The notes beneath the pieces were generated by a model, which searched no databases, was not told the DNA's origin, and saw only the letters and a program-made list of their open reading frames with translations. The translations under genes and the position numbers were made by a program. From IMG/VR virus record IMGVR_UViG_3300017917_002374, positions 1-64,000 of that record: a stretch of DNA of 64,000 bases; one strand, given 5' to 3'. Every line of letters begins with the position of its first letter. Position 1 is the stretch's first letter. Below, piece after piece: positions 15,123 through 57,019 of this stretch.

Positions 15123-15446
15123 ATGGGAAACGCAGATACTTTGACCAAAACACAAAGCAGTCTTAAAATTGAACCAAAATTAAATATTCCTGAACCACGG
15201 TTATGGAAAGTGATTTTTATCAATGATGAAATCACTACCATGGAATTTATCATAGAAGTTCTAAAAAACATATTTGATTACGACGAAGATCAAGCTCAGA
15301 ACATGACCATGAGAATACACCAAGAGGGTGCAGGTGTAATCGCAATTTATCCGCATGAAATCGCAGAACAAAAAGGTATTGAAACCACTTTGCTTGCAAG
15401 AAACAATGGATTCCCACTACAGGTTAAACTAGAACCAGAAGGATAA
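15123..15446 (+). CDS. clpS: ClpS N-end-rule adaptor
   Basis: WKVIFINDEITTMEFI, IHQEG, EIAEQK, GFPL. Confidence 0.92.
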   Translation: MGNADTLTKTQSSLKIEPKLNIPEPRLWKVIFINDEITTMEFIIEVLKNIFDYDEDQAQNMTMRIHQEGAGVIAIYPHEIAEQKGIETTLLARNNGFPLQVKLEPEG

Positions 15447-17929: not shown

Positions 17930-18126
17930 ACTTACAGAGATTGCTTATGCCAATTTTTATTAATTTTTTTAGTTTTTGGATATTGATGACCTGGACCTTG
18001 CATCGCGGTGATCCAATTGGCGCAGTGTTAACTATAATTACTTTCCTCATAATGCATGGTTTCTGCGAAGAACTTGTAGACAACAGCACTGGTTTATCAT
18101 AGTATTAGACTTTTTTGACAAGCAGA

Positions 18127-18954
18127 ATGATGCGAAAACTACTAGCCTTCTTTTTACTTTTTTGTACACAAGCAGCGGCTGCCCCTTTAACTGCAAAAAG
18201 CTGGTTGGTCACAGATGGCGAAGGAAATTTCATAGCCGGCGAAAACATGTTTGATGTTAGAAGCATTGCCAGTGTTACCAAGCTGATGACCGTGGTTACC
18301 ATACTGGACAGCAAGCTAGAACTAGACAGTCCACTCAATATCAAACTTACCACTTATAGTAAAAAAAATCGCAAGGTCAAATCCAGTCCTTACGACAATA
18401 CTACTAGACGCCAGTTGATTGATCTAGCCATGGTACGCAGTGACAATAATGCTGCACGTTTGTTATGTACCACTTATCCCACAGGATACGATGGTTGTAT
18501 AAGAGACATGAATATCAAGGCACGCAGTTTGGGCATGATCAACAGTGTGTTTTATGATCCTACAGGGCTAGATGATAGAAACAACAGTACCGCCAAGGAT
18601 CTGGTTCTTCTGGTACAATCTGGACACTTGCACCCAGAAGTTGTGTCCGCCAGTCAAAAAAGCAAAATACAAATCAAGATCAAAAAACGCTGGTTTTTAG
18701 GAAGAAATACCAATCCCTTGATTGGTACCAAACATGACATTCAAGTGAGCAAAACCGGTTGGACCACTCGAGCCGGTGGGTGTATTGTGATGCTCATGGA
18801 TACAGATCGCGGTCGCCGCATAGTGATAGTGTTGGGCAGTCGCAGTATCAAAACCAGAATTCCCGAAGCAGAATTTATTTCAACAATTGAAGGTTCTCCT
18901 GAAGAAAAACTACAACAACAAGAACCTTCAAACTTGTGGCGCCGGTGGTTTTAG
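18127..18954 (+). CDS. Peptidase S11 D-Ala-D-Ala carboxy/endopeptidase (PBP7-like)
   Basis: Signal peptide; SVTK (SxxK), SDN (SxN), KTG. Confidence 0.92.
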   Translation: MMRKLLAFFLLFCTQAAAAPLTAKSWLVTDGEGNFIAGENMFDVRSIASVTKLMTVVTILDSKLELDSPLNIKLTTYSKKNRKVKSSPYDNTTRRQLIDLAMVRSDNNAARLLCTTYPTGYDGCIRDMNIKARSLGMINSVFYDPTGLDDRNNSTAKDLVLLVQSGHLHPEVVSASQKSKIQIKIKKRWFLGRNTNPLIGTKHDIQVSKTGWTTRAGGCIVMLMDTDRGRRIVIVLGSRSIKTRIPEAEFISTIEGSPEEKLQQQEPSNLWRRWF

Positions 18955-26134: not shown

Positions 26135-26620
26135 ATGGCTAGACCAAATCCTATACGACGTATCATGCAATCCGCGCTGCCTAGTGTTACATATCAGCGA
26201 CAGAAACTTTTTAGGCCCTCTCCAAAAGATGTAAAATATGCGTATAAAATAATCAACAGGCATGTGTTTAACAATCAGCTGAAACTGCCACCTATCCAAC
26301 TGGGCGTGACCAGGGGCTATTGGGGCATGTGTATTGGGTTACACGAAGAAACTAGTCCTAACACTTTGTGCAGTCTAAAACTCAGCGACAAATACTTTTG
26401 TGTGCAATGGTTCATGAACACTCTGGCACACGAAATGGTACATCAATATCAATGGGACATCAATAGTGAATACAGACAGCAGCACGGACTGGAACCTTTG
26501 ATGAGCCACGGTCCTAGTTTTTTTGCCTGGCGTGATGTCATGGACTACTATGGACTGAGCTTGAAAACTGCACATGGACAGCGACGTTGGTTTGCACATC
26601 AAGATTTCAATAAGTGTTGA
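26135..26620 (+). CDS. SprT-like zinc metalloprotease
   Basis: TLAHEMVHQYQ, HGPSF. Confidence 0.85.
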   Translation: MARPNPIRRIMQSALPSVTYQRQKLFRPSPKDVKYAYKIINRHVFNNQLKLPPIQLGVTRGYWGMCIGLHEETSPNTLCSLKLSDKYFCVQWFMNTLAHEMVHQYQWDINSEYRQQHGLEPLMSHGPSFFAWRDVMDYYGLSLKTAHGQRRWFAHQDFNKC

Positions 26621-26670
26621 CAAACTTCCCGCAGTTCTCTATAATTGACTCTAGTTAACCAGGAGTCAGT

Positions 26671-27261
26671 ATGCCCCATTTTGTACCTACCGTATTAGAA
26701 AAAACCAGCAACGGCGAACGTGCGTATGATATTTACAGTCGCCTGCTTAAAGATCGTATTGTGATGCTGGACACAGATGTAAATGAACATTCAGCCAGCC
26801 TTGTGGTTAGCCAATTGTTGTTCCTAGAAAGTGAAAACCCTGATGCAGACATTCTTTTCTATATTAACAGCCCTGGTGGCGTGGTTACTGCTGGCATGGC
26901 TATCTATGATACTATGCAGTACATTAAACCTGACGTATCTACTATTGTAATGGGCCAGGCCTGCTCCATGGGCAGTTTGTTAGCACAAGCCGGCGCAGCA
27001 GGCAAACGCTATATTCTGCCCAATGCACGTCACATGATACACCAACCGTCAGGGGGTGCAGGTGGGCAAGCCACAGACATGGAAATTCAGGTGCGTGAGA
27101 TACTCAAAATGAAGCGTACACTTACAGAAATCTATGTCAAGCACAATAGTGCAGGCAAAGTGTATGACGAAATCCTAGCAGACATGGAACGTGATTTCTT
27201 TATGAGCGCACATGAAGCTGTGACGTATGGACTGGCAGATCAAGTGATTGAAACCAGATAA
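26671..27261 (+). CDS. clpP: ClpP protease subunit
   Basis: [24 protein letters not shown] (Ser), MIHQP (His), ERD (Asp); promoter TTGACA(26617)-17-TATAAT. Confidence 0.97.
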
Positions 27262-27282: not shown

Positions 27283-27318
27283 TAAATAATAGGAGACAGT
27301 TTGTCTCCTATTTTTTTA
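27283..27318 (+). promoter_or_regulatory. Late promoter TAAATA overlapping the 5' arm of a terminator hairpin at the head of the modular-protein cluster
   Basis: TAAATA 27283; aataggagaca-gtt-tgtctcctatt plus T run. Confidence 0.65.
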
Positions 27319-27323: not shown

Positions 27324-28991
27324 ATGCGTCTAAACGAATTTGAATCACTGGATCTTGCTGTTAATTTTCATGACGAATTGAACCCAAAACTATGGGATGA
27401 CAATCGCATGCGTCCCGAAGTACGTGCAGCACTCATGCGTATCGCAGAAAATTTCAAAGATTTCTTGGGTGTTGATATCTATGATTTACTGGATATCACA
27501 GTAAGTGGTAGTAATGCAGCATATACCTATACTTCACACAGCGACATTGATCTACATCTTGTGGTCATGATTCCTGAAGCACACGAAACCGAACTCAAAG
27601 AACTGTTCACAGCTAAAAAATATCAGTACAATGATCAACACGATATCAAGGTACGTGGATTTGATGTTGAACTGTATGTGCAAGATGCAGAAGATCCGCA
27701 TCACAGCATGGGCATCTACAGTGTGCTCAACGATCGCTGGATCAAGCAGCCTAAAAAAGTACGGGCACAAATTGATGATATAGAAGTACAAGAAAAATAT
27801 CGCAGCATCAAACACAGAATCAATCGTGCTATTGTTAGCGACGACTACGACAGTGTGCAGCAGGTTTGGAACAGTGTGAAAAACATGCGCCAGACTGGTC
27901 TAGAACAAGGTGGTGAATTCAGCCCTGAAAATCTTGCATTCAAGATTCTGCGAGCAGACGGTACCTTGGAAAAACTCAAGCGTCATATGGGCAATCTCAA
28001 AGATGCCGAACTCAGCATACACGAAGCCACTAATGCTCCTAAAAGAAAAAGTGAAGTGTATCTAGACATGGATGGTGTGTTGGCAGATTTTTTTGCAGAG
28101 TATGCAAAACTGGCGGGCGTTCAAGGAACCTATAGAGACATACCTCCTGCCAAGACTGACCCTACCTTGAACAAAATGGTAGGTACTGATTTTTTTGCAC
28201 GATTGCCTAAGTTTGGATCCGCAGATACCTTGGTCAGCATGGTGACAAGTATATTTGGTCACTATAACATCTGCTCCAGTCCACTGCGCGGAGATCACGC
28301 CAACAGTGAAAAACAAAAACGTATTTGGATCGCAAAACATCTATCACCACAGCCTAAAGATATCATTATAACACCACGTAAAGAACGTCATGCAGTACAA
28401 GAGGATGGCACTCCTAATGTGTTGATTGATGACCGCGGTGACAACATTACCAAGTGGGAAGCAGCTGGCGGCGTGGGAATAAAATATCAAGCAGATGAAG
28501 ATGGTCTTGACACTGTGACTCGTGGATTAAAACGTGCTATGAAAATCATTGCAGGCAAAAAGCAGCTGGTGCCGCAAAAATTAAAAAGTCTAGATCGCAG
28601 CATGCCAGTGGCCACACAGGACGACCCCAAGCCTCTACAGGAAACCGTTAACCAATCAGAAGTGGTCAATTTTATTAAATTTGTTTATGACAGACTGCAT
28701 ATAGACGCTCCGCTACCACGCATCAAACTGCAACAGGAAAAAGAATCTCCAGATCAAAATCGCACTGGTTGGTATAACCCTGATACAAATGAAATGTGGG
28801 TGTACACAGGCAACAGAAATTTGATTGATATTCTACGCACGGTGGCTCACGAACTGGCACATCACAAACAAAGACTAGATGGTGACACTGCTGCCAACAC
28901 TGAACTGACAGACCTAGAAGGACAAGCAGATCAAGTGGCAGGCATAATTATGAAAATATATGTAAGAAAGCATCCGGAGATTATTGAATGA
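27324..28991 (+). CDS. Fusion protein: Pol-beta-type nucleotidyltransferase + HAD 5'(3')-deoxyribonucleotidase + HExxH zincin
   Basis: GSNAAY..SDIDLH / VELYVQD; YLDMDGVLAD..LIDDR; TVAHELAHH; domains joined at IHE and LQE. Confidence 0.8.
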   Translation: MRLNEFESLDLAVNFHDELNPKLWDDNRMRPEVRAALMRIAENFKDFLGVDIYDLLDITVSGSNAAYTYTSHSDIDLHLVVMIPEAHETELKELFTAKKYQYNDQHDIKVRGFDVELYVQDAEDPHHSMGIYSVLNDRWIKQPKKVRAQIDDIEVQEKYRSIKHRINRAIVSDDYDSVQQVWNSVKNMRQTGLEQGGEFSPENLAFKILRADGTLEKLKRHMGNLKDAELSIHEATNAPKRKSEVYLDMDGVLADFFAEYAKLAGVQGTYRDIPPAKTDPTLNKMVGTDFFARLPKFGSADTLVSMVTSIFGHYNICSSPLRGDHANSEKQKRIWIAKHLSPQPKDIIITPRKERHAVQEDGTPNVLIDDRGDNITKWEAAGGVGIKYQADEDGLDTVTRGLKRAMKIIAGKKQLVPQKLKSLDRSMPVATQDDPKPLQETVNQSEVVNFIKFVYDRLHIDAPLPRIKLQQEKESPDQNRTGWYNPDTNEMWVYTGNRNLIDILRTVAHELAHHKQRLDGDTAANTELTDLEGQADQVAGIIMKIYVRKHPEIIE

Positions 28992-30292
28992 GGTACCAAG
29001 ATTTTTTAGCGGAAGGCATACTGTTTGAATATGATAGAACAATCACTGCCAAGAACTATGGAGACAAGATTTTACTTGTAGCAGCCAAAGACCGTTGGCT
29101 GGTTGATCAAATTGCAGGACGCAATCGTCTAGGCATGAGCTTTCAAGAAGCAGTGAAAAAAGATCCTGCCATGATCATAGATGCTATTTTAGAAATACTA
29201 GAACGTGGCGATCCCACCCGCAATAAAGAATACACACAGGCCATTGCCAAGATGTATGCCAATGGTGGCATCATGGCAGAGGATGTGGTATCCACTCTAG
29301 CAGACTACCTGGCTAAGTTTGACAAGCTGAAACGCCGGAAGAAAATTCCGCCGCCACGTAACGACTTCAATCGTTACAAGAGCAAGGATGATTTCTATGA
29401 TGTGGTGGATGAATATCCTGACGAAGAAGCAGAAGACAAACCAGAAGAAAAAAAGAACGCTACGGAACTGTATCGTGATAGCAAACTGATTGTGACCATA
29501 CCCAATGATGTGGAAGCTGCCTGTTACTATGGACAGGGCACACGCTGGTGTACAGCGGGCAAGAACAATAACATGTTTGACTACTATACCAAGGGAGGCC
29601 GTCCACTGTATGTGATCATTCCACGACAGCAGGAGTACCCAGGTGAAAAGTATCAGTTTCACTTCGAAACCAAGCAGTTCATGAATGAACAGGATCGTCA
29701 GATTGGCGAAGACGGCATGCGCAAGCTGGTCAAGCGTTTTCCACAGTTGCCCAAGATCCTGCAGAAGCCTGCAGAGCAGTTCATGATTGCACCACTACTG
29801 TCGCAGGAATACAAGAACATCGTGATAGAAAGCACAGAAGAAGTTCAGAAGGCCACTGTGCAGTTGATCAATCAGTATGCTGACCGTATCATTGCATTTG
29901 GATTCAAGAGTTTGGATGGCTATGGTGTGCAATTGCCAGACGCAGCAAAACAGACCATTGCAGACAGCATGCGTGACTACTTGGCTGACTGTGTGAAAAA
30001 CATGGGCAGCTTTTGGCAGGAGATTACTGCCAAACCAGAACTGGCTCGTGATGAAGACAAGATTGAAAGCCTGCTGAGTGCCAACAGAAATCTACAGGCA
30101 GTGGCAGATAAAAGCGCAGCGGTGGACCAGCTGAAAGCAGCACTGGCACAGACCGGACAGAAGATTCACAAGGATGCAATGGCACACATTATTGAACTCA
30201 CAGTGCGTGATCCACTGTTCCGCTTCATGATGAAACAGGTGGCCAAACTGTACACCGCTAAACTACAGGAGCAGGGCCATGCGCTACAGTGA
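28988..30292 (+). CDS. Putative head-packaged protein with YGxGTxWC domain (PcfJ-like, tentative)
   Basis: N-terminus MRYQDFLAE; AACYYGQGTRWCTA, KYQFHF. Confidence 0.55.
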   Translation: MRYQDFLAEGILFEYDRTITAKNYGDKILLVAAKDRWLVDQIAGRNRLGMSFQEAVKKDPAMIIDAILEILERGDPTRNKEYTQAIAKMYANGGIMAEDVVSTLADYLAKFDKLKRRKKIPPPRNDFNRYKSKDDFYDVVDEYPDEEAEDKPEEKKNATELYRDSKLIVTIPNDVEAACYYGQGTRWCTAGKNNNMFDYYTKGGRPLYVIIPRQQEYPGEKYQFHFETKQFMNEQDRQIGEDGMRKLVKRFPQLPKILQKPAEQFMIAPLLSQEYKNIVIESTEEVQKATVQLINQYADRIIAFGFKSLDGYGVQLPDAAKQTIADSMRDYLADCVKNMGSFWQEITAKPELARDEDKIESLLSANRNLQAVADKSAAVDQLKAALAQTGQKIHKDAMAHIIELTVRDPLFRFMMKQVAKLYTAKLQEQGHALQ

Positions 30293-32141
30293 ACTGATTG
30301 AAAACACAGACAGCGACGATGATTTGTTTGCTAAACCATTGGCGGATAGAATTCGTGCTCGTTTGGCAGAGTTAGAAGATCAGGACTTTATGGAACCTGA
30401 GGACATGATTGACCAGGTGGCTGAGGAGTTCAATCTAGAAGTAGAACAAGTTTATGATCTACTGGATGACGAAGTATACGAAAACACAGATGACGATGAT
30501 CTGTTTGGCGGCAGTGATCGCGGGACGCCCTCTCCTGAGAAGGCAGTGGCCAAGTTCAAGATGTTTTTTCCTATAAACAAGCGTGTGAGCTGGAGTAAGA
30601 TGCATTTTGGAACCGTTGACCGCTTGTTTGGCTTCTCCACCGACTCACGTTTTCACGCAGGAGCCAGTTATGACAGACACAGCTACTGGGGCACACAGGC
30701 CTATACCAATCGCCAGACTGGCCTAGGCTTGCTGATCTATGAAGACAGTGGTCAAGGTACCTGGGCATATCTAGGCGCACAGAGTCGTGAGGATATGGCT
30801 CACATGATACAGCAGTTGATTGCAGCAGATCAGTTGGAAGATCCTGAGGCAGCAAAGCAACGTCGCCTGGCCAAACAACAAGGCCGTGCTGCTGCCGCTG
30901 AGAAAAAAGGCATTCGTGTGGGCGCCAAGATACGAGTACCCTACCAAGGACAAACTGCCACAGCAGAAGTGGTCAGCATTTCCAAGGCTGGTAAACTGAA
31001 CCTACGCATGATAGATGGACCAGATGCAGGACAACTGCACTCCTGGCAGCCCTCCGCACACAGCGTTAGAAAAGCAGATGTGCTAGGTGAGAATGATGAT
31101 GACGATGACGAGCTGTTTGGTGAGCCAAGATCCTACATGTTCATTGTGGCAGCTCCAGATGATGAAATAGTAGGAAACTACAAAAATATTGAAGATGCTC
31201 TAGACGCAGCACGATTTTTAGTAGATGATTATCTAGAGGCAGGCTATGAGGACACTGATGCTATTAGAGTTATGAAATACAAAACAGACAGTGATGGCAT
31301 GGTTGATTTTGACGAAGCAGGGGTCACAGTTGGCACTATCTATCTAGGCACAGGAGAACTGGCAGAAAATTTTGACGACGATGATATGTTCGCTACCCCC
31401 ACAATCAAGTTTGCTGACTTGTTCAACGAGTACGACGAGGATCAATTAATGGCACAAGGTTTTCAATATGGAGACCATCCTGAGCAGGACATTGAAATAC
31501 TCAACGACTATTTAGAAGACTATAAAGATTTCCGTGTGGTTGGTATCAGTGGCGGCGAGCATGACCTAGTGCTGCATCTAGACCGCAGCAGCAAACTAAG
31601 AGAAACAGACGATGATGAACTGTTTGGTTCACTAGCACTAACCGCTGCCAAGATTGGTAAACTGTTAGGTGCAGCAGGCATAACCAGTGGTGAAATCGTT
31701 GATCCTGAAAGCGTAAATCTAGCCTTGCACAGAATTGCGGCACTGGACAAGTATCGTATCCGGGCAGAAATCATGCAGCAGCAGTGGTTGAACATGGATG
31801 AAGACACTGCCTGGAACATGGTAGATGACATAGCCAATGTGGTATACGACATCAACGGTGACGGCTGGGAACCAGAAGACACCATCTACAACGAATCAGA
31901 TGATGAGCTGTTTGGTAAAAAGTGGCATGAGCGCATCAACATGAGCAGCATTGAGTTGGACGGCATAGATCGCAGTGACAGTCCTGACTTCTCAGATGCT
32001 CATGTGAGCTATGCAGAGTTTGACGACGGCAAGCCACTGAATAATGAACAGTTGGAATGGCTGACCAATGAGCTGGGCAGCACAGGTGAATTGCATGAGC
32101 TGGTCTGGGACAGTTTGCACGAGGGCCAGCATGCGTTATAA
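30279..32141 (+). CDS. Modular acidic polyprotein-like protein, 6 xE-DDDLF linkers
   Basis: LIE-NTDSDDDLF, VYE-NTDDDDLF, LGE-NDDDDDELF, LAE-NFDDDDMF, LRE-TDDDELF, YNE-SDDELF. Confidence 0.75.
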   Translation: MRYSELIENTDSDDDLFAKPLADRIRARLAELEDQDFMEPEDMIDQVAEEFNLEVEQVYDLLDDEVYENTDDDDLFGGSDRGTPSPEKAVAKFKMFFPINKRVSWSKMHFGTVDRLFGFSTDSRFHAGASYDRHSYWGTQAYTNRQTGLGLLIYEDSGQGTWAYLGAQSREDMAHMIQQLIAADQLEDPEAAKQRRLAKQQGRAAAAEKKGIRVGAKIRVPYQGQTATAEVVSISKAGKLNLRMIDGPDAGQLHSWQPSAHSVRKADVLGENDDDDDELFGEPRSYMFIVAAPDDEIVGNYKNIEDALDAARFLVDDYLEAGYEDTDAIRVMKYKTDSDGMVDFDEAGVTVGTIYLGTGELAENFDDDDMFATPTIKFADLFNEYDEDQLMAQGFQYGDHPEQDIEILNDYLEDYKDFRVVGISGGEHDLVLHLDRSSKLRETDDDELFGSLALTAAKIGKLLGAAGITSGEIVDPESVNLALHRIAALDKYRIRAEIMQQQWLNMDEDTAWNMVDDIANVVYDINGDGWEPEDTIYNESDDELFGKKWHERINMSSIELDGIDRSDSPDFSDAHVSYAEFDDGKPLNNEQLEWLTNELGSTGELHELVWDSLHEGQHAL

Positions 32142-34479
32142 CGAGATCATTGAAAGTGCGGATGATGACGATGACCTGTTTGGTCGCGGTCTGCATCATC
32201 GTATCGCTGCGGCTCTACTGGCACAGGCCGAGGAAGACCAGCGTATCGCAGATGAAGAACGCGGACTAGGTGACCAGATTCATCGTAATGTGCAAAACGC
32301 AGATGAGTTTGAAGCACAAGCTAGAAACTATCGTTACATAGCAGACGCTTTTAATCAAAGCATGGCTCAGGGAGTTAAAGTTTATCGCAGTCTAGACCGC
32401 AGCTGGAAAGGTGCAGTGGATGATGTTGTGGACATTGAGCTTGACATGGACTTCCGCGACTATGTGAAACAGATTCCAGAAAGTGCGGATGACGATGACT
32501 TGTTCTCTACCAGTCCAAAGTTGGATCGCCGTCAAGAGCTGAAAGCCAAGGCCATTCGTCGCATAGAAAAGCGTGACGCACTGAACATACAGCCAGGCAC
32601 ACGACTCATGGTCAAATGGGACAATGGCAAATACTACAAAGGCAAAGTGGTCAGACTCACTCCCAGTGGCCGCGTGATAGCACAGGTAAAGTTTCACAAT
32701 GTGGGCTGGCCCTTGGAAAAGAACATCAGTCCACGTGACATCAAGCCTGAACACATCTTGAAAGAAACAGATGATGACATGTTTGCCAAGAACAGTCAGA
32801 TGAGCCAAGACATCAAAACCAAGCTAAAACAAATTGATGATCCTTATCTGCGCACTGTACGCAAGATTCGTGAGTTGGCAAAAACCAAATATGGTGCAAA
32901 AATTCGTGTGAGTGGTGCACCCAAGACATCGGCCCGCGGCAGAGCAACTGTTTGGGTGGGCGACTATGATGCAAATTATCAAATTCCAAAAACTACCCCT
33001 GAGGCCTATGCTGTAAAAAACGATTTAGAACAGATGGGATTTGAGTGTCGTTTTACAGACGCAGGTTGGCTCAGTGTCAAGGTTCCGCCAGTGTTCTCTG
33101 ATCTAATCAGCGAAGAAAGCGACGACGAGCTGTTTGGGCAAGAAGATGGCGCTCGTCTGGCACTGAAACTATTGAAACTGTTACGAGCAGCAGTGGCTCG
33201 CGATCCTCGTGGTGTGGGTGAAATGCTGAAACAGTACAGCAATGAAAACAGCACTCTGGCACAGAGAGTAGATTATACCTTGGATTACATGGCACAGGCC
33301 GTGGGCATGCCACGTGAGATATTTGACAAATACGCAGATGACTTTTTCATACTGCCATGGCCCACAGGTGTGGACATAAACCGTCCATGGCAGATCTGGG
33401 ATGCACAGGTGTTGGACCGAATCATTGAGACCATGCGACGAGTGGTTTATGGCCGGGACATGAATGAAAGTGATAATGACGATGACCTGTTCAGCCATAG
33501 TGTGCATGAAGAAGTGATATATCGTGTGGAAGAATATAAAAAAGGTCTTGAAAAACATCTAGAAGTAGTACAGCAGGCAGATCCTGAAGACGCAGAATAT
33601 CTTGAGGATGTGATCAATGATGTGAATCAAGTGTTGGCCAAATTGCAGAAAAATTGGATAGAAGGCATGGATGCACTGCTACAAGCATCAGATAGCGAGG
33701 ACTGGGCAGAAAATATCATGCACGAACTCAAGGCAGATAATATACCGTTGAACAGATACTACCGCGCACCTTGGCTGCGCGAAGACGCAGACGATGATGA
33801 ACTGTTTGGTGAAACTACCTTGGCAGATCGTGTGGCTGATTTAATCAAGCACAAGCAACGTGTACGCATTCTAGTACCTGGTGCCATGGGCTTTGTGCGA
33901 GCTGTATTTCATGGCAGCACTGCTATCAGTCGCAGCATGAAGAGCACTACACGCTACGCCTGGCCAGGACTGCACGGCGAACGAGCTAACGGCCTTGAGT
34001 TGGTACAAAATCCTGCCACACGCACCTGGGACATTGTAGAGCGAGACCAGGCTGTAAACATGCGTAAATACACAGAAGACATTGGTGACGATGAACTGTT
34101 TGGCAGCGGCTACAGTGCTGTGCAAAGACAGATCTATGAAACAGGCCGGCAAATGTTGCAAGCACTGAAAGACAGTTGGAAACAGGATTCTGTGCGCAGC
34201 GAATTTCAAACTTACATGGATGCCGACGATGGCGACGCTATGTTTGATCTTGTGCAGGATGTGACCAGAGTGCATGGTTGGCCAGCACTGGTAGTAGACA
34301 CTGTGATTCGTGAATACACTACCATGGAAGGACTCAACGACTTTGGCTGGATGCTGGAAGAAGGCAGCTTCAACGACCTAGAGGAAGCCTGGGAAAGATT
34401 TAGAACAGATAGAGAAATCAAAAACGAACCCTGGTTCCAAGCGGAAGCAGACAGATTTATGAAAAGAAAACTAAGATGA
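32131..34479 (+). CDS. Modular polyprotein-like protein, 7 xE-DDDLF linkers
   Basis: Start MRYNEIIE at 32131; IIE-SADDDDDLF, IPE-SADDDDLF, LKE-TDDDMF, ISE-ESDDELF, MNE-SDNDDDLF, LRE-DADDDELF, YTE-DIGDDELF. Confidence 0.75.
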   Translation: MRYNEIIESADDDDDLFGRGLHHRIAAALLAQAEEDQRIADEERGLGDQIHRNVQNADEFEAQARNYRYIADAFNQSMAQGVKVYRSLDRSWKGAVDDVVDIELDMDFRDYVKQIPESADDDDLFSTSPKLDRRQELKAKAIRRIEKRDALNIQPGTRLMVKWDNGKYYKGKVVRLTPSGRVIAQVKFHNVGWPLEKNISPRDIKPEHILKETDDDMFAKNSQMSQDIKTKLKQIDDPYLRTVRKIRELAKTKYGAKIRVSGAPKTSARGRATVWVGDYDANYQIPKTTPEAYAVKNDLEQMGFECRFTDAGWLSVKVPPVFSDLISEESDDELFGQEDGARLALKLLKLLRAAVARDPRGVGEMLKQYSNENSTLAQRVDYTLDYMAQAVGMPREIFDKYADDFFILPWPTGVDINRPWQIWDAQVLDRIIETMRRVVYGRDMNESDNDDDLFSHSVHEEVIYRVEEYKKGLEKHLEVVQQADPEDAEYLEDVINDVNQVLAKLQKNWIEGMDALLQASDSEDWAENIMHELKADNIPLNRYYRAPWLREDADDDELFGETTLADRVADLIKHKQRVRILVPGAMGFVRAVFHGSTAISRSMKSTTRYAWPGLHGERANGLELVQNPATRTWDIVERDQAVNMRKYTEDIGDDELFGSGYSAVQRQIYETGRQMLQALKDSWKQDSVRSEFQTYMDADDGDAMFDLVQDVTRVHGWPALVVDTVIREYTTMEGLNDFGWMLEEGSFNDLEEAWERFRTDREIKNEPWFQAEADRFMKRKLR

Positions 34480-36722
34480 AAAGCAAAGATTTCCTAAATG
34501 AAAAGTGGAGCCAGAAGTACAAGAAGAGCATCAACTGCTCTAACCCCAAAGGCTTCAGCCAACGTGCGCACTGTGCAGGCCGCAAGAAAAACGAAAGTGT
34601 GGAACTGGATGAAATTGATCGCAGAGGATTCCTCAAGGGCCTTGGTGCTGCTGCACTGGCAGGTGCAGGTGGCGCTGCCATGGCAGGAGATCTAGAAGGT
34701 CAGATAGGCCCACTGCCCATCATGGCTACTATCAAAGTGCAGATGCCAGACGGCACTGTGAAAACAAAAAAGATTGATCTTGGTCATGAGTACGACTACA
34801 GACTGGATGATGCCAAGAAAGAAATTGAACAGATCCTGGATCGCAAGGGCGTGAAGAACTATACCATTCACTTGGACAGATACAAGGACAATGAGGCATA
34901 TCTGGATCGTGAACAGATGAAGCCGCAGTCAAAGACTGACAAAAACGACTACATGGATCGTAAACCCTATCAGCCCAAAGGCGGCAGTGGCAGCTATGTG
35001 GACAACACACCTGCCCGGGCCAGCGGCAAACACAACTACATGGATCCTGCCAACTACGAAGAAAGTTTACAGGAATACGGCGATACTGCCCGAGGTCAAA
35101 AGCAGTTGACCCGGGTTCACAAACGTGCAGTTGATCGTCTAATCAAGGCAGATGACCAAAACATGTTAGAGCCAGATTATACCAAAAGAGATTTAAAAAC
35201 AGTAAGAAAGAATGCAGACACTGCTAACCGTGCTTGGGATAGATTCACAGATCTGGATTTAGATGAAGCATCAGTTTATAAAAAAGATCAAGACCTAAGC
35301 AGTATTCCTACTCAAGAACTTGAAGCATTTGTTAAAAAACATTGGGGTGGTGGTATTCCAACTTATGGCCAAGGCAAAAGTGTTCAACGAGCCATGCGAG
35401 AATTGCGCCGCAGACAAAAGCAAGGTGTGGCGGAAGGCTCTGCTGGAGCAAAATACAAAATAAAAAGCATTGGCAAAGACAAGAACGGTGATTACTACAT
35501 CAGCCCTAACACAGGCAAAAAAGTTTACAAGAATGCTAAAGTGGGTGATCACGAAACTCCACGCGGGGAAGTAAAACCTAAGGTGACGGAAAACAATGAC
35601 AGTGATGAAGAATTGTTTAGCGTGTCTCAAACGCCACCACGAACAGCACAGGCACTATACCATTGGAGCCGCATGGATCCCAACAGATACAGTTTTCGTG
35701 CCATAGCTGAATTTGCCTTGAGTAACAAGCTGACCTTAAAGCAGGCACTGGAAGTTACTTCAAGGTTTGACGAGTACAACGAACAGATGCAAGATGAATA
35801 TGGTGTTGATGATGATCAAATGAGTGATCTGTTTGGCGCATATGAAGAAGTGTGTGATGCATGGAACACTGATCCAACAGGCGATACCAGTACAAATGAC
35901 TCCTGGGAAAAACTACGAGAAGCAGATGCAGAACTAGCAGAACCACCTGAGCGTCCACGCAAAACCACAACAAAGACCAAGACCAAACCTGATATCAAAT
36001 TTGATATTCCGTTCCAGCAAGATCAAGATCGTCCTCTGGCCAAAACAGATCCACTGGATGACTTGAAAAAGAAAGCTGGACTAGGTGATGAGCCTAAGGT
36101 CAACATTAAGAAGGCCAAACAAAAGGATACCTTGAGCAAAACCGCAGGCATTGGCAGTGATGACATGGCAGACATGCTGAGTCGCATGCGTAACATTGAA
36201 ATAGATCGTGATCTAGAAGCCTATCCAGAGCCAGAACCACCAGAGCAGTTGCCATCAGTGGAAGTGAACACAGCCAATTTGCCAGCAGTGGCAGGGCAGG
36301 CATTACAAGCCGCAGGCGTGCAGAATCCAGATTTCCATCAAGTGGCTAACCTGCCAGGCAACATGGCAGACCAAATTCGCCAGCTGGGCAAGAGTCTGTT
36401 TGGCAGTCTAACCATGACACCTACCAAGCGTATTCACGTGGTGGCCAATCTAGGCGGACAAGGCCCTAACAGCTCAGCAGAAGTAAACGCAGTGGCCGGC
36501 TTCCTAAAAGACCACGGTAAAGATCTAGGCCCAGGCGACATTGACTTTGACAATGTCATGCCAGGCTACAAGGCACAAACACACATGTTCTCAGCAGCAG
36601 GCATTCGCTGGATGCTGGTAAAAGACTTTGCCGGACAGTACATCTACTGCTGGCCAGAAGAAGACAGCCATGATGCAGTGGATGCGATTGGCCAGGACAC
36701 GGACGTTAAAAGACTAAAATGA
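34476..36722 (+). CDS. Modular polyprotein-like protein with internal Tat-like signal
   Basis: MKSKDFLNE; LDE-IDRRGFLKGLGAAALAG; QGVAE; VTE-NNDSDEELF; further LQE/LDE/LRE joints. Confidence 0.7.
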   Translation: MKSKDFLNEKWSQKYKKSINCSNPKGFSQRAHCAGRKKNESVELDEIDRRGFLKGLGAAALAGAGGAAMAGDLEGQIGPLPIMATIKVQMPDGTVKTKKIDLGHEYDYRLDDAKKEIEQILDRKGVKNYTIHLDRYKDNEAYLDREQMKPQSKTDKNDYMDRKPYQPKGGSGSYVDNTPARASGKHNYMDPANYEESLQEYGDTARGQKQLTRVHKRAVDRLIKADDQNMLEPDYTKRDLKTVRKNADTANRAWDRFTDLDLDEASVYKKDQDLSSIPTQELEAFVKKHWGGGIPTYGQGKSVQRAMRELRRRQKQGVAEGSAGAKYKIKSIGKDKNGDYYISPNTGKKVYKNAKVGDHETPRGEVKPKVTENNDSDEELFSVSQTPPRTAQALYHWSRMDPNRYSFRAIAEFALSNKLTLKQALEVTSRFDEYNEQMQDEYGVDDDQMSDLFGAYEEVCDAWNTDPTGDTSTNDSWEKLREADAELAEPPERPRKTTTKTKTKPDIKFDIPFQQDQDRPLAKTDPLDDLKKKAGLGDEPKVNIKKAKQKDTLSKTAGIGSDDMADMLSRMRNIEIDRDLEAYPEPEPPEQLPSVEVNTANLPAVAGQALQAAGVQNPDFHQVANLPGNMADQIRQLGKSLFGSLTMTPTKRIHVVANLGGQGPNSSAEVNAVAGFLKDHGKDLGPGDIDFDNVMPGYKAQTHMFSAAGIRWMLVKDFAGQYIYCWPEEDSHDAVDAIGQDTDVKRLK

Positions 36723-38998
36723 GATACAACGAACTGATTGAAAACGATGATGAGGACATGTTTGGCGCCAGCGAACGTGTGGATCGTGACCTGCGTCGCG
36801 CTACCTTCAATGCCAATATACCAGAAATGATTCGTCGTGTGCAGCAGGGCCTACTGGCCAGTGCAGATCGTCAGGCGCGAGCCATGGCCATGGAGTTTGT
36901 TAGAGAAGCCAACTATCTTGAAAAAGAAGAAGTGTATGGACTGGCTCGCGAGATATTCACACACGATGCACCGCAGCATCTGCATCAGGCCTTTGCTATT
37001 GTGAGTGAGGATCCTGCCATCATTGCAGATGAAGATATGCTGAGTGACGTCTTGATGACCAACAACATATTCACCAACATACGCAAGGACAGCGATCTGT
37101 GGATCTATGCAACAGAAATGATAGAAGATTTTGCTGAAGGTGACGAGGAACTGGAATATCACCTGGGCATGGAAATAGAAGGCACAGTGGGCAATCTAAT
37201 AGTACGGCTCATGCAAGACGCATTTGCCAATGTGCGAGCACTGGGTGAGAATAGCAAGCCAGGTGTGCCGCAACCAGGGCCAAGTTCTGGGGCTCCTAAG
37301 AAATTTGGCTCTGATGCTAAAATACAAACTCGCCAGATGACGGTAAATGATATTATATCATCTGTGCCTGGTGTTCCCTATTACAACAATGTGGTGGATG
37401 ATTGGGACGCCAAAGATTACAGTTGGGGCGTGACCAAAAAGGTCATAGAGTACGCAACCTACTTGAAGGATCATCCAGAAAGTCTGGCACAGTTACCGCC
37501 AGCAATAGTGTTGAATGGCAAGTTTGAAGATGGTGCCCACAGGGTATCTGCCATATGGTTGCTGCAACAAAGAATGGATCCTAAAAATCCCTTATGGAAA
37601 CGTGCCAAATTAAATGTTCAGTTTGTTGAGCAAGGTGTCACAGAAGCCACAGACGACGAACTGTTCAGCAAATCACGTGAGCGTCCTGTGAATCGTTTTA
37701 CCATTTATGTTAATAATAAACCACTGCGCACCATGATAGATCTGGAGCAGGCGGCAGGTGTGGCAGAGGACTTGATAAACCAAGAAACCCGGCGAGTGAA
37801 TGTGCAGGTGGTCAACGCCGTTGATGGTGAAATACTCTGGAGTGGCGGCACTGACCGCATGGGCAAATGGTATGGTGCTTATGCAGCTTATCTTGAAGAA
37901 ACAGAAGATGATGACGACTTGTTCAGCAATCGCCCCAACGGCAAAGTAATAGCACATGATCTAGAACTGTGGCTGCGTCGCAGACAGTCAGGCAGTCGTC
38001 GTCCGCTCAGCAGCTATTCTGCAGATGCCATAACGGAAATTATAGCAGCGTTTAATAAAAGTTTTGCAGCAGGTGTGCAGGCCTGGGACGTGGCGCCAAT
38101 CATTGCAGATCTAAAATACGACATTCGCGAGTACATTGGCAGCAGTCAGCACATTGATCTTGCTGACCATGTGCAAGAACTCAATGAAGCTCCTCTAGCA
38201 GACTACGAGCCCATGGGTGACTTTGAAAAGCCAGGCCCCTTTCGTGGCGCAGATAAGAAATTAATTCCTCATCCTACCAACAAGCTCAAGACCGCACGTT
38301 TCTTTGAACAAACACCCTATGACTTTAGACTGTTCTTCAGCAACATTCCTGGCACCGGTCGTTACAGCGAATACGGTCCAATGGAACCACGGGTCATACA
38401 AGAGATATTCAAGGATGCTGCTGAACAGATTCTAGCAGGATCAGAAAATGCCATTACAGTGGTGTTTGTGGGCAACAAAGGTGACAGCAAGGTCATGCTC
38501 ACACCCTGGATGATGGCGCATAGAATTGGACATGCTGTGCAAGCCGGCACAAGATTAGCAGGTGGACGCGGCGCCTGGCGCGAAGCAGAAAATCATTTCT
38601 TCCGTGGCATCAATCAATTGCTCAAAGACTTCTATGGCAAGAGCAGCAACAATCGTTACGACGGTGAAGCCAACTGGGCCATGAGTCAAGAATATGCAGC
38701 ACTGTTCAATGCCATTGGCACACAGCGCAGTAGCCGCAAAGGTGAGATCAAAAGACCATACGAATTTCTGTATGAATTGTTTGCACAGTATCTGGGCACA
38801 GGACGGATTGAGCTCAATCCACTGCCACAAAAACAATCCTATGGTCGCAAGGTGTTTGGTCGCAGCAGTCAAAGTCTACGCATGACACCTGGCGCAGAAG
38901 AGGAATCAAAATACACAACTGAAGTCTTAGCACGTGACATGGAAATCATGTTCAGCGATGTGCTGAGTGAACTGGTTGGGAAAGTGTTGGTGATGTGA
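36719..38998 (+). CDS. Modular polyprotein-like protein with a ParB/Srx-like module and an HxxxH module; 3 xE-DDDLF linkers
   Basis: MRYNELIE-NDDEDMF; LPPAIV..EDGAHR; VTE-ATDDELF; LEE-TEDDDDLF; MAHRIGH. Confidence 0.7.
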   Translation: MRYNELIENDDEDMFGASERVDRDLRRATFNANIPEMIRRVQQGLLASADRQARAMAMEFVREANYLEKEEVYGLAREIFTHDAPQHLHQAFAIVSEDPAIIADEDMLSDVLMTNNIFTNIRKDSDLWIYATEMIEDFAEGDEELEYHLGMEIEGTVGNLIVRLMQDAFANVRALGENSKPGVPQPGPSSGAPKKFGSDAKIQTRQMTVNDIISSVPGVPYYNNVVDDWDAKDYSWGVTKKVIEYATYLKDHPESLAQLPPAIVLNGKFEDGAHRVSAIWLLQQRMDPKNPLWKRAKLNVQFVEQGVTEATDDELFSKSRERPVNRFTIYVNNKPLRTMIDLEQAAGVAEDLINQETRRVNVQVVNAVDGEILWSGGTDRMGKWYGAYAAYLEETEDDDDLFSNRPNGKVIAHDLELWLRRRQSGSRRPLSSYSADAITEIIAAFNKSFAAGVQAWDVAPIIADLKYDIREYIGSSQHIDLADHVQELNEAPLADYEPMGDFEKPGPFRGADKKLIPHPTNKLKTARFFEQTPYDFRLFFSNIPGTGRYSEYGPMEPRVIQEIFKDAAEQILAGSENAITVVFVGNKGDSKVMLTPWMMAHRIGHAVQAGTRLAGGRGAWREAENHFFRGINQLLKDFYGKSSNNRYDGEANWAMSQEYAALFNAIGTQRSSRKGEIKRPYEFLYELFAQYLGTGRIELNPLPQKQSYGRKVFGRSSQSLRMTPGAEEESKYTTEVLARDMEIMFSDVLSELVGKVLVM

Positions 38999-39258
38999 TG
39001 CTCAAACTATTGGTTCTCAGCGTGGCACTGAATGCGGCAGAATTGCCATATAGAGAGTTGGAAAAGTACTACTGGGACTGCGATACCCTGTTCATGAAAG
39101 GTGAACTGGGCGGGCAGGACACCTGGAGTTGTCTGGCTGTCACTGACGAGTTCCAAACCTATTTTGACAGCAAAGAAGATTTCATGATCTATTGGCACGA
39201 ACACAGAATGCAACAGTGGCAGAGTCGTGGTTATTACCCTAAGGCAGAGATATACTAA
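38998..39258 (+). CDS. Small secreted hypothetical protein
   Basis: Short signal-like N-terminus. Confidence 0.55.
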   Translation: MLKLLVLSVALNAAELPYRELEKYYWDCDTLFMKGELGGQDTWSCLAVTDEFQTYFDSKEDFMIYWHEHRMQQWQSRGYYPKAEIY

Positions 39259-39259
39259 A

Positions 39260-39985
39260 ATGAGATACCACGAAATAGTAGCAAAAGATTCACCTGCTGA
39301 GGATAGGCATCCTAATGATCGTCCATATGGACCAGAAGCCAAACCTACCATGCCCAAGGGCACAGTTAGAGTGGATGTCAGCGACGTGTATGATTGGTAC
39401 AAGCTGGGCATGAACATCAGTGATCTTAAAAAAGCCAACAAGAGTCAGTTTGGTAAAGGTCCTCCTAGCACCATAGTTTCTTTTGGTGACGAAAACACTG
39501 AACACAAGTATATCAAGGATCTTGAAAATCTTGGACTTACGACCACTGACATAGATCCTGTTGATCCCAATCAGCCCCGAGGCATGCCGCGTCAGAAAGT
39601 TGATCCCACATTCAATGTAGATGAAAACTTTGCTGATGGCAAAGTAAAAGGCAAGAGTCGTCCGGGCCGTGTGAAACGTGCAGGCGCAAGTTGCAACGGG
39701 TCAGTAACTGATCTACGAGCTCGTGCCAAGAATGCTAGCGGTGAAAAGGCAAAAATGTATCACTGGTGTGCAAACATGAAAAGTGGTCGTAAGAAAGCCA
39801 ATGAAGCCAGCCCCACAGGACTAGAGTTTAAAGGTTACCCATGCACCAAGGACTGTTCAGGACATCAAGCCGGGCATGATTGGGCAGAGCGTTGGGGTAT
39901 TGAAAATCCAGATTCTTGTCCTTACAGCAACAACAGTTTCTGGGAGGGCTGTCTAGCTCGCACAGACGACTTTCAAGATGAGTAA
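39260..39985 (+). CDS. Modular protein with three E-joined modules, two of them Cys-rich
   Basis: MRYHEIV start; VDE-NFADGK..SC..HWC; ANE-AS..GYPCTKDCSGH. Confidence 0.65.
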   Translation: MRYHEIVAKDSPAEDRHPNDRPYGPEAKPTMPKGTVRVDVSDVYDWYKLGMNISDLKKANKSQFGKGPPSTIVSFGDENTEHKYIKDLENLGLTTTDIDPVDPNQPRGMPRQKVDPTFNVDENFADGKVKGKSRPGRVKRAGASCNGSVTDLRARAKNASGEKAKMYHWCANMKSGRKKANEASPTGLEFKGYPCTKDCSGHQAGHDWAERWGIENPDSCPYSNNSFWEGCLARTDDFQDE

Positions 39986-39993
39986 ATAAGCAT

Positions 39994-41349
39994 ATGAAAA
40001 TTACAGAAATTACCAAAGGTCGCACATTAGGCGGATTCCCAGTCCAAGTGTTAGACATACAAAACAGCGAAGTAGACGAAAATCAATATCGCCGCGAGTT
40101 TAAACGCAACGAGCTAGAACATGAGCTAGGACACGAAACAAACAACTATTCCGTTAGTATTAATGGTAAAAGTTGGAAAGTGTTTGCGAGCAAAGCACAT
40201 GCCGAAGCAGTGGCTCGCAGTGTACAAATGAAAAATCCTACCAAAAAAGTAGGTGTGCATGAGACTGGTGAATCAGTCTCAGAAGCACTCAAGCTGAACG
40301 CTCCGCAGCGTCGCATGAGTAGAGATGAGTTACAAGGCTATGCTGATCGTATTAAAACAGGTACTAAAACCAAACAAGATAAATTTGCACCAATTATTCA
40401 CGGGAGTAATATCAAGGCAATCACGCAGAGCGACAATCCTGATGACAAATGGGATCTGGATGATCTAGCGGCGCAGATTACAAAACGTCCTTCTAAAATA
40501 CTTGGCACCAATGCCAAAATGGAAAAAAGCCGTACAGAAGGCGAGATTGTGTATGACCTTACGCTACCAGCACTTTCCGGCATAGTGGTGGATGAAAGTA
40601 ACGGCGACTTTGTGGAAATCACAACCTGCCCAGGTGCAGGTGAATGCCAATTGTATTGTTATGCTCGCAAGGGCGGATATGTGATGTTTCCTGCCAGCTC
40701 CATGAGTGCGGCACAGGCCTTGAACTTCTTGGTTAATGATCCTGAGGGATACATGGCCATGGTGAATCGCGAAGTTAAAGCACTCAAAGGCAAAACAGAC
40801 AAGCATGGGATTAGACTGGTAGTACGTTGGCACGATGCAGGCGACTTCTTCAGCAAAGAATATTTAGATCTAGCCTATAAGGTAGCAGAAGCCAATCCTG
40901 ATGTGAAGTTTTATGCTTATACCAAGATGGGCGAAGTGGCAGTAGGAAACAAGCCGGCCAACTTTATTGTGAACTTCAGCACAGGTGCCAAGAGTCGTGA
41001 AGTGAAAAAAGTTACCTTACACAAACAAGCAGGCAACATTGTTAAGGACGCCATCACTGTGCCTAAGGACATGTTCCGCAACCTGTTTGTAACAGATGCC
41101 AAAGGCAAGTATGTGAAGGATGAAAAAGGTCGTACACAGGTGCGTGGCGAAGCGGAATGGAATCAATTCAAACAGCAGTTGGGCGCCAAGTATGACATTG
41201 ATCCAGACACCATTATTACATATGACCAAATGCTAAAGATTCCAGAAGGGCCTACGCCCAAGTGGCATGTGGTTATTTTCCCTGCAGGGCATGGCGATCG
41301 TGCTGCAAACAGACTGGACGTGATCAACAGTTTCTTAATGTTTCATTAA
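39994..41349 (+). CDS. Phage GP88-like Cys-cluster protein with N-terminal extra modules
   Basis: TCPGAGECQLYCYA, VRWHDAGDFFS, FYAYTK. Confidence 0.75.
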   Translation: MKITEITKGRTLGGFPVQVLDIQNSEVDENQYRREFKRNELEHELGHETNNYSVSINGKSWKVFASKAHAEAVARSVQMKNPTKKVGVHETGESVSEALKLNAPQRRMSRDELQGYADRIKTGTKTKQDKFAPIIHGSNIKAITQSDNPDDKWDLDDLAAQITKRPSKILGTNAKMEKSRTEGEIVYDLTLPALSGIVVDESNGDFVEITTCPGAGECQLYCYARKGGYVMFPASSMSAAQALNFLVNDPEGYMAMVNREVKALKGKTDKHGIRLVVRWHDAGDFFSKEYLDLAYKVAEANPDVKFYAYTKMGEVAVGNKPANFIVNFSTGAKSREVKKVTLHKQAGNIVKDAITVPKDMFRNLFVTDAKGKYVKDEKGRTQVRGEAEWNQFKQQLGAKYDIDPDTIITYDQMLKIPEGPTPKWHVVIFPAGHGDRAANRLDVINSFLMFH

Positions 41350-41354: not shown

Positions 41355-41457
41355 TAGCAAAAAAGCAACAAAAAACCCTAGTATTTGCTAGGGTTTTTTT
41401 ATGGTTGACCAAAAACACCCATTTCTATATAATATGGGTTCAATAACAAATTAGGAG
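41355..41457 (+). promoter_or_regulatory. Terminator + early promoter + SD cassette (start of early region)
   Basis: gcaaaaaagcaac box, aaccctag-tatttg-ctagggtt plus T run, TTGACC(41405)-17-TATAAT. Confidence 0.8.
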
Positions 41458-57007: not shown

Positions 57008-57019
57008 TAGGAGGCTCAA

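Follow-up and report, generated by a model that had tools for sequence, protein, structure and literature searches.

Shuffled polyproteins with T4-like leaders and a repeated acidic junction motif: a candidate internal-protein locus of an uncultured phage

How is a run of phage genes to be read in which one short acidic motif stands in front of one small domain after another? The question is raised by four adjacent genes at 30279-38998 of a 64-kb stretch of DNA, called the window below. The window is the first 64 kb of the 354,959-bp metagenomic contig Ga0192394_131365 (JGI 3300017917; IMGVR_UViG_3300017917_002374). It is phage DNA, encoding rIIA, rIIB, DNA ligase, ribonucleotide reductase, ClpX, ClpP, ClpS and virion proteins. 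Its + strand holds nearly all of its genes, among them the four genes in question and their neighbours in the block described below. No close GenBank phage was found for the window. The top matches of rIIA are jumbo phages of the PA5oct group of Pseudomonas, at ~30% identity, and the best explanation of the source is an uncultured jumbo phage of ~355 kb, which would be a distant relation of the PA5oct/T4 superfamily.

For the four genes themselves, the best available explanation from the sequence is that they encode capsid-targeted internal proteins of the T4 type, in the form of shuffled polyproteins and with an undescribed acidic tag that would be retained after processing. Genes are named here by their first position in the window, and a slash within a peptide marks a predicted cut.

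The motif and the modules it joins

The initial annotation had counted 17 copies of a motif in which a hydrophobic-x-Glu triplet is followed by a run of acidic residues and [LM]F. All 17 are present, as 6, 7, 1 and 3 copies in genes 30279-32141, 32131-34479, 34476-36722 and 36719-38998. The triplets are identical to those listed earlier at every copy, and the genes, which overlap by 4-14 nucleotides (nt), are adjacent and overlapping, again as had been claimed. When the residues of the four proteins were shuffled 5000 times, the full pattern appeared 0.036 times on average and at most twice, compared with 17 observed. The bare core of at least two acidic residues and [LM]F appeared 0.37 times on average and at most four times. 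The core motif is absent from every other coding open reading frame (ORF) of the window.

Codon use in the motif is as varied as in the background (GAT 30 and GAC 23, CTG and TTG, TTT and TTC). The repeat is therefore selected at the level of the protein. For the same reason, a DNA-level repeat or recombination signal was rejected.

Searches with the first two polyproteins yielded 72 homologues, all of them metagenomic. Together with the four window genes these make 76 proteins, which contain 248 unique motif sites. The sharpened motif is PHI-x-E, where PHI is a hydrophobic residue, then 4-8 residues, then D-D-[DE]-[LM]-F-[GAS]. Counted from the Phe, which is present at 100% of the sites, position -4 is Asp (94%), -3 is Asp (90%), -2 is Asp or Glu, and -1 is Leu (81%) or Met (17%). 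The following residue is Gly (66%), Ala (19%) or Ser (14%), that is G, A or S at 99% of sites and in 17 of the 17 window copies. A PHI-x-E triplet is found 3-11 (mostly 5-7) residues before [LM]F at 224 of the 248 sites. Under a stricter window it is found at 88% of sites, compared with 16% of control positions in the same proteins (p = 6e-129). Conservation of the hydrophobic residue at P3 and Glu at P1 had been set beforehand as a test of the idea, and this pair is kept at 88-90% of 229-248 unique homologue sites.

Two likenesses suggested earlier did not survive the larger sample. Superficially, with its acidic run, hydrophobic residue and Phe, the tag resembles two host replisome ligands, the C-terminal tail of SSB (DDDIPF) and the beta-clamp-binding motif (QL[SD]LF). 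By mimicking them it could steer modules to the replication or repair machinery. The function of the SSB tail, however, needs the free C-terminal carboxylate of its Phe. The motif is always internal, with G, A or S behind it, and terminates none of the 72 proteins. The clamp-binding motif needs Gln at its first position, where the 248 unique sites have Asp in 94% and Gln in less than 1%. Mimicry of this kind is extremely unlikely.

The motif is present only between modules of ~100 amino acids (aa). There is one tag per module, always preceding it and including the first: in 60 of the 72 proteins a copy follows immediately after the first ~8 residues. When all proteins are cut after the motif, 375 pieces result (median length 102 aa), and these fall into 57 sequence families. 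In the window, the families (denoted by letters) are arranged L-J-I-A-B-C and E-F-G-H-O-M-K. In relatives they are arranged E-D-F-G-B-H-O-M, E-F-H-O or D-B-G-A-C-K. Since the same families occur in many orders and neighbourhoods, the motif joins the units of a beads-on-a-string architecture, whose evolution proceeds by the shuffling of modules.

The first polyprotein (30279-32141, 620 aa) has the leader MRYSELIE/N and six tagged modules, with predicted products of 60-203 aa. Its junctions are LIE-NTDSDDDLF-A (30294-30329), VYE-NTDDDDLF-G (30474-30506), LGE-NDDDDDELF-G (31083-31118), LAE-NFDDDDMF-A (31359-31391), LRE-TDDDELF-G (31596-31625) and YNE-SDDELF-G (31887-31913). The second polyprotein (32131-34479, 782 aa) has the leader MRYNEIIE/S and seven tagged modules. 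Its true start is the Met of MRYNEIIES at 32131, not the ATG at 32068, as indicated by the JGI gene call and all homologues. At the gene overlaps 30279-30292 and 32131-32141 the upstream proteins end in ...GHALQ and ...GQHAL, since the codons for these ends are shared with the conserved start of the following gene (GC ATG CG[CT] TA). The translation-start region is thus duplicated together with the leader.

If the motif marks joints, it should lie outside folded domains. This had been proposed as a test, and the AlphaFold models passed it. In the second polyprotein, the predicted local distance difference test score (pLDDT) is below 50 at all seven motifs: IIE-SADDDDDLF-G (32146-32181; aa 1-18), IPE-SADDDDLF-S (32473-32505; aa 116-131), LKE-TDDDMF-A (32758-32784; aa 212-235), ISE-ESDDELF-G (33106-33135; aa 322-337), MNE-SDNDDDLF-S (33460-33492; aa 442-456), LRE-DADDDELF-G (33775-33807; aa 551-561) and YTE-DIGDDELF-G (34069-34101; aa 645-659). 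The modules between them score 70-90, and across both models 70-97.

The other model is that of the fourth polyprotein (36719-38998, 759 aa, leader MRYNELIE/N), which has three tagged and two untagged junctions. Here too pLDDT is below 50 at the three motifs, LIE-NDDEDMF-G (36734-36763; aa 1-23), VTE-ATDDELF-S (37637-37666; aa 305-324) and LEE-TEDDDDLF-S (37892-37924; aa 386-396). The same holds for both untagged junctions, LGE/NSKPGVPQPG (37241-37279; aa 175-195) and LNE/APLADY (38180-38206; aa 477-490). Between these junctions lie two units of special interest below, a very widespread PQPG-SSGAPK module (aa ~182-310) and a C-terminal module (aa ~491-759, pLDDT >90).

The third gene (34476-36722, 748 aa, leader MKSKDFLNE/K) is a cargo protein with a single tagged junction, VTE-NNDSDEELF-S (35583-35618), and an untagged GVAE/G junction (35424-35438) of a type known from the wider family. 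A further untagged junction, LDE/IDRRGFL (34605-34634), lies directly 5' of a latent Tat-like signal. This near-consensus signal, RRGFLKGLGAAALAGAGGAAMA (34605-34700, aa 44-75), is found 45 residues inside the protein, right after LDE/ID. Its Pfam TAT_signal match (0.009) is below the cut-off. It is conserved in two related loci (L003 and P0070) and recurs in a third (P0115) as an internal module after LEE/VD. A cut at LDE/ID would expose the signal at a new N-terminus, and the injected protein might then be re-exported to the periplasm.

A recognised function was found for no module. Pfam, PHROGs, PDB sequence profiles and Foldseek (PDB, BFVD) gave only a Tudor/SH3-like barrel and uncharacterised proteins of uncultured phages; in Pfam alone, the four polyproteins have zero matches. 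The barrel lies at aa ~155-200 of gene 32131, and its Foldseek matches are Tudor domains (probability ~1, TM 0.6-0.7, E 0.2-0.5). The confidently modelled C-terminal module of gene 36719 matches only uncharacterised proteins of uncultured phages. Some module bodies are acidic (pI 4.1-4.9) and others basic (pI 9.5-10.5), and the idea of the tag as a charge neutraliser of basic cargo was rejected on this ground.

The PQPG-SSGAPK module (37262-37648) is 87-95% identical at the protein level across many IMG/VR contigs (loci L108-L122) whose flanks differ, and it is far more conserved than its surroundings. A DGAHR motif in it was at first taken as ParB-like. This is unsupported by Pfam and Foldseek, and AlphaFold confidence there is just 50-70.

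The acidic-[LM]F tag following a putative cut site has not been described before. A full-text literature search found no description, in a phage context, of the tag or of a family of leader-bearing cargo arrays. Among the GenBank phages (50,697 records), the 8.7-kb region, the second polyprotein and both widespread modules of gene 36719 have zero matches.

Leaders, internal junctions and the T4 internal proteins

The capsid targeting sequence (CTS) of phage T4 offers a model for the first residues of these proteins. The first 10 residues of IPIII suffice for loading into the T4 prohead; residues 4 and 7 serve targeting, residues 8 and 10 direct the cut by gp21 after Glu, and Asp at P1 blocks processing by gp21 (PMC9026906). 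The T4 N-termini (NC_000866) read MKTYQEFIAE/A in both ipII and ipIII, MAKINELLRE/S in gp24, MLKEQLIAE/A in gp22 and MNEPQLLIE/T in gp21.

N-termini of this kind, with the pattern M-[RK]-x-x-[ED]-PHI-PHI-(x)-E, cluster in a single unbroken block of the window at 27324-41349. They open all eight of its genes, gene 39994 being a weak case. The nearest to the ipII/ipIII leader is MRYQDFLAE/G, at the start of a 434-aa gene (28988-30292) directly before the polyproteins. Its YQDFLAE shares 5 of 7 residues with YQEFIAE of T4, and the D/E and L/I differences are conservative.

This block, again after ClpP, is also present in two relatives, a 351-kb ENA contig (L002) with 11 leader genes and a 180-kb JGI contig (L003) with 9. 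Two or more leader-bearing genes occur on the coding strand in 32 of 59 IMG/VR loci, compared with 3 matches in total on the opposite strand; two of the loci carry MKTYQFITE/T. The internal proteins of T-even phages are a diverse set that has only the targeting sequence in common (PMC3012670). The same is found here, where unrelated proteins share only the leader in the 8 genes of the window, the 11 of the ENA contig and the 9 of the JGI contig.

Are the internal sites equivalent to the leaders? Evidence comes from a full-database search with gene 36719, which gave 1064 representative clusters (E <= 0.001). Among the top 150 relatives, 82 start with a leader such as MRAxEFIxE or MKINEIIxE, and 8 carry the acidic tag. 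The PQPG module is preceded by (Q)GVAE/G in 58 of 65 cases, and otherwise directly by an N-terminal leader (MRASEFVVAE/GVPQPG), at the boundary that in the window reads LGE/NSKPGVPQPG. Likewise, stand-alone relatives of the C-terminal module have a leader ending in ITE and then APL.D (MKINEIITE/APMSD, MRAHEFITE/APLQS) at exactly the point where the window has ...ELNE/APLADY. One and the same module can thus stand behind either a T4-like leader or an internal PHI-x-Glu. Nothing argues more strongly for the internal sites being cut in the manner of the leader.

In the wider family, the junctions consist of PHI-x-E only, without the acidic tag. The tag takes the place of that family's strongly conserved non-prime consensus, QGVAE/G, and always lies at a short, bounded distance after the Glu site. 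Among the sequences compared, it is a speciality of the window's subclade, laid over an older junction.

These observations bear on a rival explanation, in which the proteins are never cut. They would be multidomain "polyvalent" proteins, either cytoplasmic or packaged, and DD[DE][LM]F would be a multivalent short linear motif for one partner, for instance an oligomeric host hub. Disordered linkers between folded modules agree with this, as does the acidic [LM]F core, which is more strictly conserved than PHI-x-E. Polyvalent multidomain phage proteins are moreover an established class (PMC5512222). The explanation accounts neither for the conservation of the upstream PHI-x-Glu (88% versus 16%) nor for the copy right after the 8-residue leader in 60 of 72 proteins, and it leaves unexplained why stand-alone modules follow directly on a T4-like cleavable leader. 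It is unlikely.

Cleavage, by comparison, leads to the following scheme. The block 27324-41349 would be a locus of internal proteins, the cargo of the head. On each of the eight genes, a short propeptide of the CTS type would direct the protein into the prohead's scaffolding core. Four of the genes would encode polyproteins whose modules, of 60-200 aa, fold independently, are shuffled and are joined by disordered junctions. The PHI-x-Glu of each junction is a site of the kind that is cut by prohead proteases of the gp21 family (S77), and D-D-[DE]-[LM]-F-[GAS] comes 4-8 residues later. During maturation of the head, a cut after Glu would remove the leader and separate the modules, so that the acidic tag remains at the new N-terminus of each product. 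Some 17 tagged products of 60-376 aa, and a few from the untagged junctions, would remain inside the capsid and pass along with the DNA into the next host, where they would probably act as factors of host takeover or anti-defence.

This scheme of head-packaged, injected cargo polyproteins, cut after Glu by the prohead protease into ~17 tagged products, is held with modest confidence, a little beyond an even chance. The initial annotation had the same core idea, of head-packaged polyproteins matured after PHI-x-Glu. The parts of it that could be put to the test, disorder of the linkers and conservation of the sites, stood; as for packaging, cleavage after Glu, ejection and any function of a module or of the tag, we infer them.

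Four known systems resemble the locus in part. The closest are IPI, IPII, IPIII and Alt of T4. They share an N-terminal leader of ~10 residues with the same residue pattern, ending in PHI-x-Glu. Other shared features are small products (here ~7-23 kDa, and three larger ones of ~34-42 kDa) and a hypervariable locus of unrelated proteins that have only the leader in common (PMC3012670, PMC9026906). T4 has one protein per gene, whereas here there are up to seven modules per gene with internal junctions. T4 has nothing like the conserved acidic [LM]F tag that here follows the predicted cut site and would be retained. The T4 internal proteins are basic, and the modules here are acidic as well as basic. 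Finally, both the protease and packaging are known in T4, whereas for this phage they are predicted.

A second resemblance is to the polyvalent proteins of phages and conjugative elements described by Iyer, Burroughs, Anand, de Souza and Aravind in 2017 (PMC5512222). They combine many unrelated domains in one polypeptide, are shuffled as mosaics and are predicted to be delivered together with the DNA; a zincin-like peptidase has been proposed to release them, and an HExxH module is found at this locus. In the definition given there, such proteins have 2-15 distinct globular domains in mosaic architectures, which is also what the AlphaFold models and the 57 families indicate here. Domains typical of the class include the zincin-like MPTase peptidase, DdrB-ParB and the LPD families. 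Unlike them, the four polyproteins are without any Pfam match to a polyvalent-protein domain, and their modules are much smaller. The repeated junction signal and the T4-type leader set the locus apart too: a keyword look-up of PMC5512222 found neither ("linker" occurs 0 times).

The third case is that of the head and ejection proteins of the giant phages phiKZ, 201phi2-1 and SPN3US. A protease related to gp21 cuts them after Glu at x-x-E, sometimes at several sites, and their conserved N-terminal propeptides have been likened to the CTS (PMC5694885). Their P3 residue is small (A/S/G-x-E), however, and their propeptides are long (>100 aa) and discarded; an array of shuffled modules and a retained tag are not reported there. 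The fourth is the polyprotein of viruses such as the picorna-like viruses, in which a single translation product with a repeated junction consensus releases several functional units. There the units belong to the replication and structure of RNA viruses, whose own 3C- or 2A-type proteases cut them. Here, by contrast, accessory modules are found in a double-stranded DNA phage, and the likely protease is the enzyme of capsid maturation.

Candidate proteases and the fate of the tag

Indirect evidence for a place in the virion is provided by Pseudomonas phage PA5oct. Its gp205 (EST35_0205), homologous to gene 28988 rather than to any of the four polyproteins, carries the annotation of a structural protein on the basis of electrospray tandem mass spectrometry (ESI-MS/MS). 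A second virion protein confirmed by mass spectrometry is gp150, of 73 aa, which begins MKINDIITE/G and so has the same leader signature as array members in relatives of the window. The gp150 gene lies between the portal gene and a protease gene whose product belongs to Peptidase_S77, the gp21 family (5e-24 to PF03420). The gene order is that of the T4 head: portal, small core proteins, protease, scaffold and a capsid protein of the Gp23 type. As a side observation, the annotated GTG start of PA5oct gp148 (L007 781-3177, 798 aa) reads VAEDIRIVG..., like a GVAE/[GD] junction. Judged from this sequence, the true start of the gene could be more 5', or VAEDIRIVG could be the mature N-terminus.

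Several points weigh against packaging and cleavage by a prohead protease. The resemblance of the leaders to T4 spans just 8-10 residues, and PHI-x-E is a short pattern. The virion evidence stems from PA5oct, and not from the source phage or any phage that bears the acidic tag. No prohead protease was detected with an S77 profile across the window, 60 loci that flank arrays and the contig as far as 82 kb. The source contig is also not among the 120 listed relatives of the PA5oct protease, nor among 80 metagenome loci of S77 relatives. Its presumed membership of the S77 group rests on distant relatives, such as the rIIA that is ~30% identical to that of PA5oct. Since the same proteins also contain untagged junctions, a junction can do without the tag, which makes the tag less plausible as a determinant for the protease. 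No module has a recognised function, so the label "effector" is a guess. Furthermore, a terminator-like hairpin stands between the block and the early-looking promoter of ClpP, and the block is without a recognisable promoter of its own.

A different protease is conceivable within the array itself. The C-terminal part of gene 27324 (aa ~445-555, 28656-28988) is a zincin-like module with HELAH in its sequence, and it is the second candidate for the processing enzyme. Homologues of this module of ~110 aa are found in 24 of ~62 related loci, either stand-alone, often behind a CTS-like leader of their own, or as the last module of a polyprotein. The enzyme of the junctions might thus be this peptidase, in place of the prohead protease or alongside it. 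Its cut might even fall before [LM]F, giving products that start with Leu-Phe or Met-Phe. Many zincins prefer to cut before hydrophobic residues, and the interchange of L and M together with the invariant Phe would suit a hydrophobic S1'/S2' pocket. For polyvalent proteins, Iyer et al. propose that a zincin-like peptidase (MPTase) releases the units (PMC5512222). The module nevertheless matches the Pfam zincin families only below threshold and is a candidate peptidase only; it could equally be an effector. Because the wider family has the module without having the acidic tag, the peptidase is kept as a rival and is not preferred, and its role at the junctions is judged improbable.

Should the zincin-like module cut before [LM]F, an idea involving ClpS would become possible. 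An N-degron read by ClpS is a Leu, Phe, Tyr or Trp at the very N-terminus, and ClpS works with ClpA. The tag would then be a latent N-degron: once it is trimmed to Leu or Phe, the phage ClpS would hand the injected module to a Clp protease and so time the life span of the effector. The phage does encode ClpS (15087-15443, Pfam 6.8e-26) as well as ClpX and ClpP, the residues after the Phe are flexible and rich in G, A and S, and ClpP adjoins the block in three genomes. ClpP (L100, L125) or ClpX (L108, L111, L112, L114, L115, L117, L121, L133, L138) also lies within 10 kb of 11 further arrays that bear leaders and no tag, which suggests that phage Clp systems and leader-bearing arrays are linked more widely, by synteny or by function. 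That Clp genes accompany untagged arrays also speaks against the degron. At 17% of sites there is Met in place of the Leu that is needed, and ClpA, the partner of ClpS, was not seen in the window. We know of no enzyme that cuts after an acidic run, and for gp21 itself Asp at P1 is inhibitory (PMC9026906). A latent degron is very unlikely.

ClpP (26671-27261) is a separate unit directly 5' of the block. As a maturation protease it is not favoured: it is a canonical, full-length ClpP (Pfam 1.2e-79) that has its own promoter as well as a terminator-like hairpin, the genes for ClpX and ClpS lie elsewhere in the window, and Clp genes are found beside untagged arrays too.

What, then, does the tag do? 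The favoured reading, given odds of roughly one in three, makes it the prime-side part of the junction signal. The machinery of processing or loading, be this the S77 protease, the core or the HExxH peptidase, would dock to it, and the product would simply retain it. Otherwise it may be a handle for a target in the host. A related possibility makes DD[DE][LM]F-[GAS] a dedicated, portable signal on each unit of ~100 aa, for head loading, for ejection or for docking to a common host hub. Phages of this clade would have built their injected arsenal by shuffling more than 50 families of tagged modules, and the signal can be likened to the common effector signals of secretion systems. This is a tentative proposal, and doubtful as it stands. 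In one variant of it, a co-packaged HExxH peptidase and the phage ClpS may read the tag and so time the life of the effectors.

If capsid targeting and cleavage apply as proposed, the locus and its relatives would be a large unexplored library of small phage proteins that are injected with the DNA, a class to which the T4 restriction inhibitor IPI belongs. The loading principle of T4, a short leader and a Glu-specific cut, would reach well past the T-even phages and be applied to polyproteins. The junction signal makes module boundaries readable from sequence, so that dozens of ~100-aa domains, candidates for anti-defence or host takeover, can be excised for screening. The T4 targeting sequence has already been used for loading foreign proteins into capsids. 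The tag, a testable new short linear motif, might help in such loading.

Transcription and surroundings of the block

Transcription of the block is set off from that of its neighbours. ClpP has a perfect sigma-70 consensus promoter, TTGACA-17-TATAAT (12/12), at 26617-26645. A hairpin with a T-run (27288-27312, + strand) separates ClpP from the block. Between its end and the ATG of gene 27324 lie 11 nt, and the related ENA contig has kept it. The hairpin leaves no room for the usual ribosome-binding site before gene 27324, and this arrangement too is kept in that contig. Sigma-70-like sites of at least 11/12 are not found inside the block, and strong ones return only after a palindromic, terminator-like hairpin at the end of the block (41370-41399, strand not assigned). 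The T4 late promoter TATAAATA is not enriched in the window, with 3 occurrences versus 1.75 expected, none of them near the block.

The first gene of the block (27324-28991, 555 aa) has the leader-like N-terminus MRLNEFE/S. It consists of a nucleotidyltransferase-like N-domain, an NT5C domain (1.3e-5) and the HExxH module at the C-end, and further matches are phrog_36119 (3e-52) and the metallo-protease phrog_87 (4e-4). Behind the polyproteins lies a gene of 241 aa (39260-39985) with the leader-like N-terminus MRYHEIVAKD, which in the homologue of the JGI contig reads MRYSEIIQKN. The last gene of the block (39994-41349, 451 aa) begins MKITEITKG..., has the weakest resemblance to a leader and contains a GP88 domain (Pfam PF17338, 2e-31). 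In the ENA and JGI relatives, this domain is found in the second or first gene of the block.

Beyond the window, at 75.2-82.3 kb of the contig (L149 13275-20345), there are genes for an eIF-1A-like protein, a superoxide dismutase and an Fe-S assembly protein. They are followed by an ORF of 2299 aa without a Pfam match (contig to ~82 kb).

Elsewhere in the window, a cluster for proteostasis and translation at 12863-15443 comprises ClpX, ribosomal protein bS21 (4.5e-18), HSP20 (1.5e-17) and the ClpS mentioned above. A 136-aa ORF at 7678-8085 matches the ubiquitin family (Pfam 5.4e-9) and lies just 5' of a gene for a virion structural protein (8092-9714), and one small ORF matches the PAAR motif (2.6e-13). 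A stand-alone LPD29 (large polyvalent protein associated domain 29) is found at 59938-60318 (2.7e-11). Host-like auxiliary genes (51059-52069, 56444-57933, 18115-18954) encode a phosphate-binding protein of the PstS type, an AhpC peroxiredoxin, a GDSL-like hydrolase, a protein of the CMD family and a D-Ala-D-Ala carboxypeptidase.

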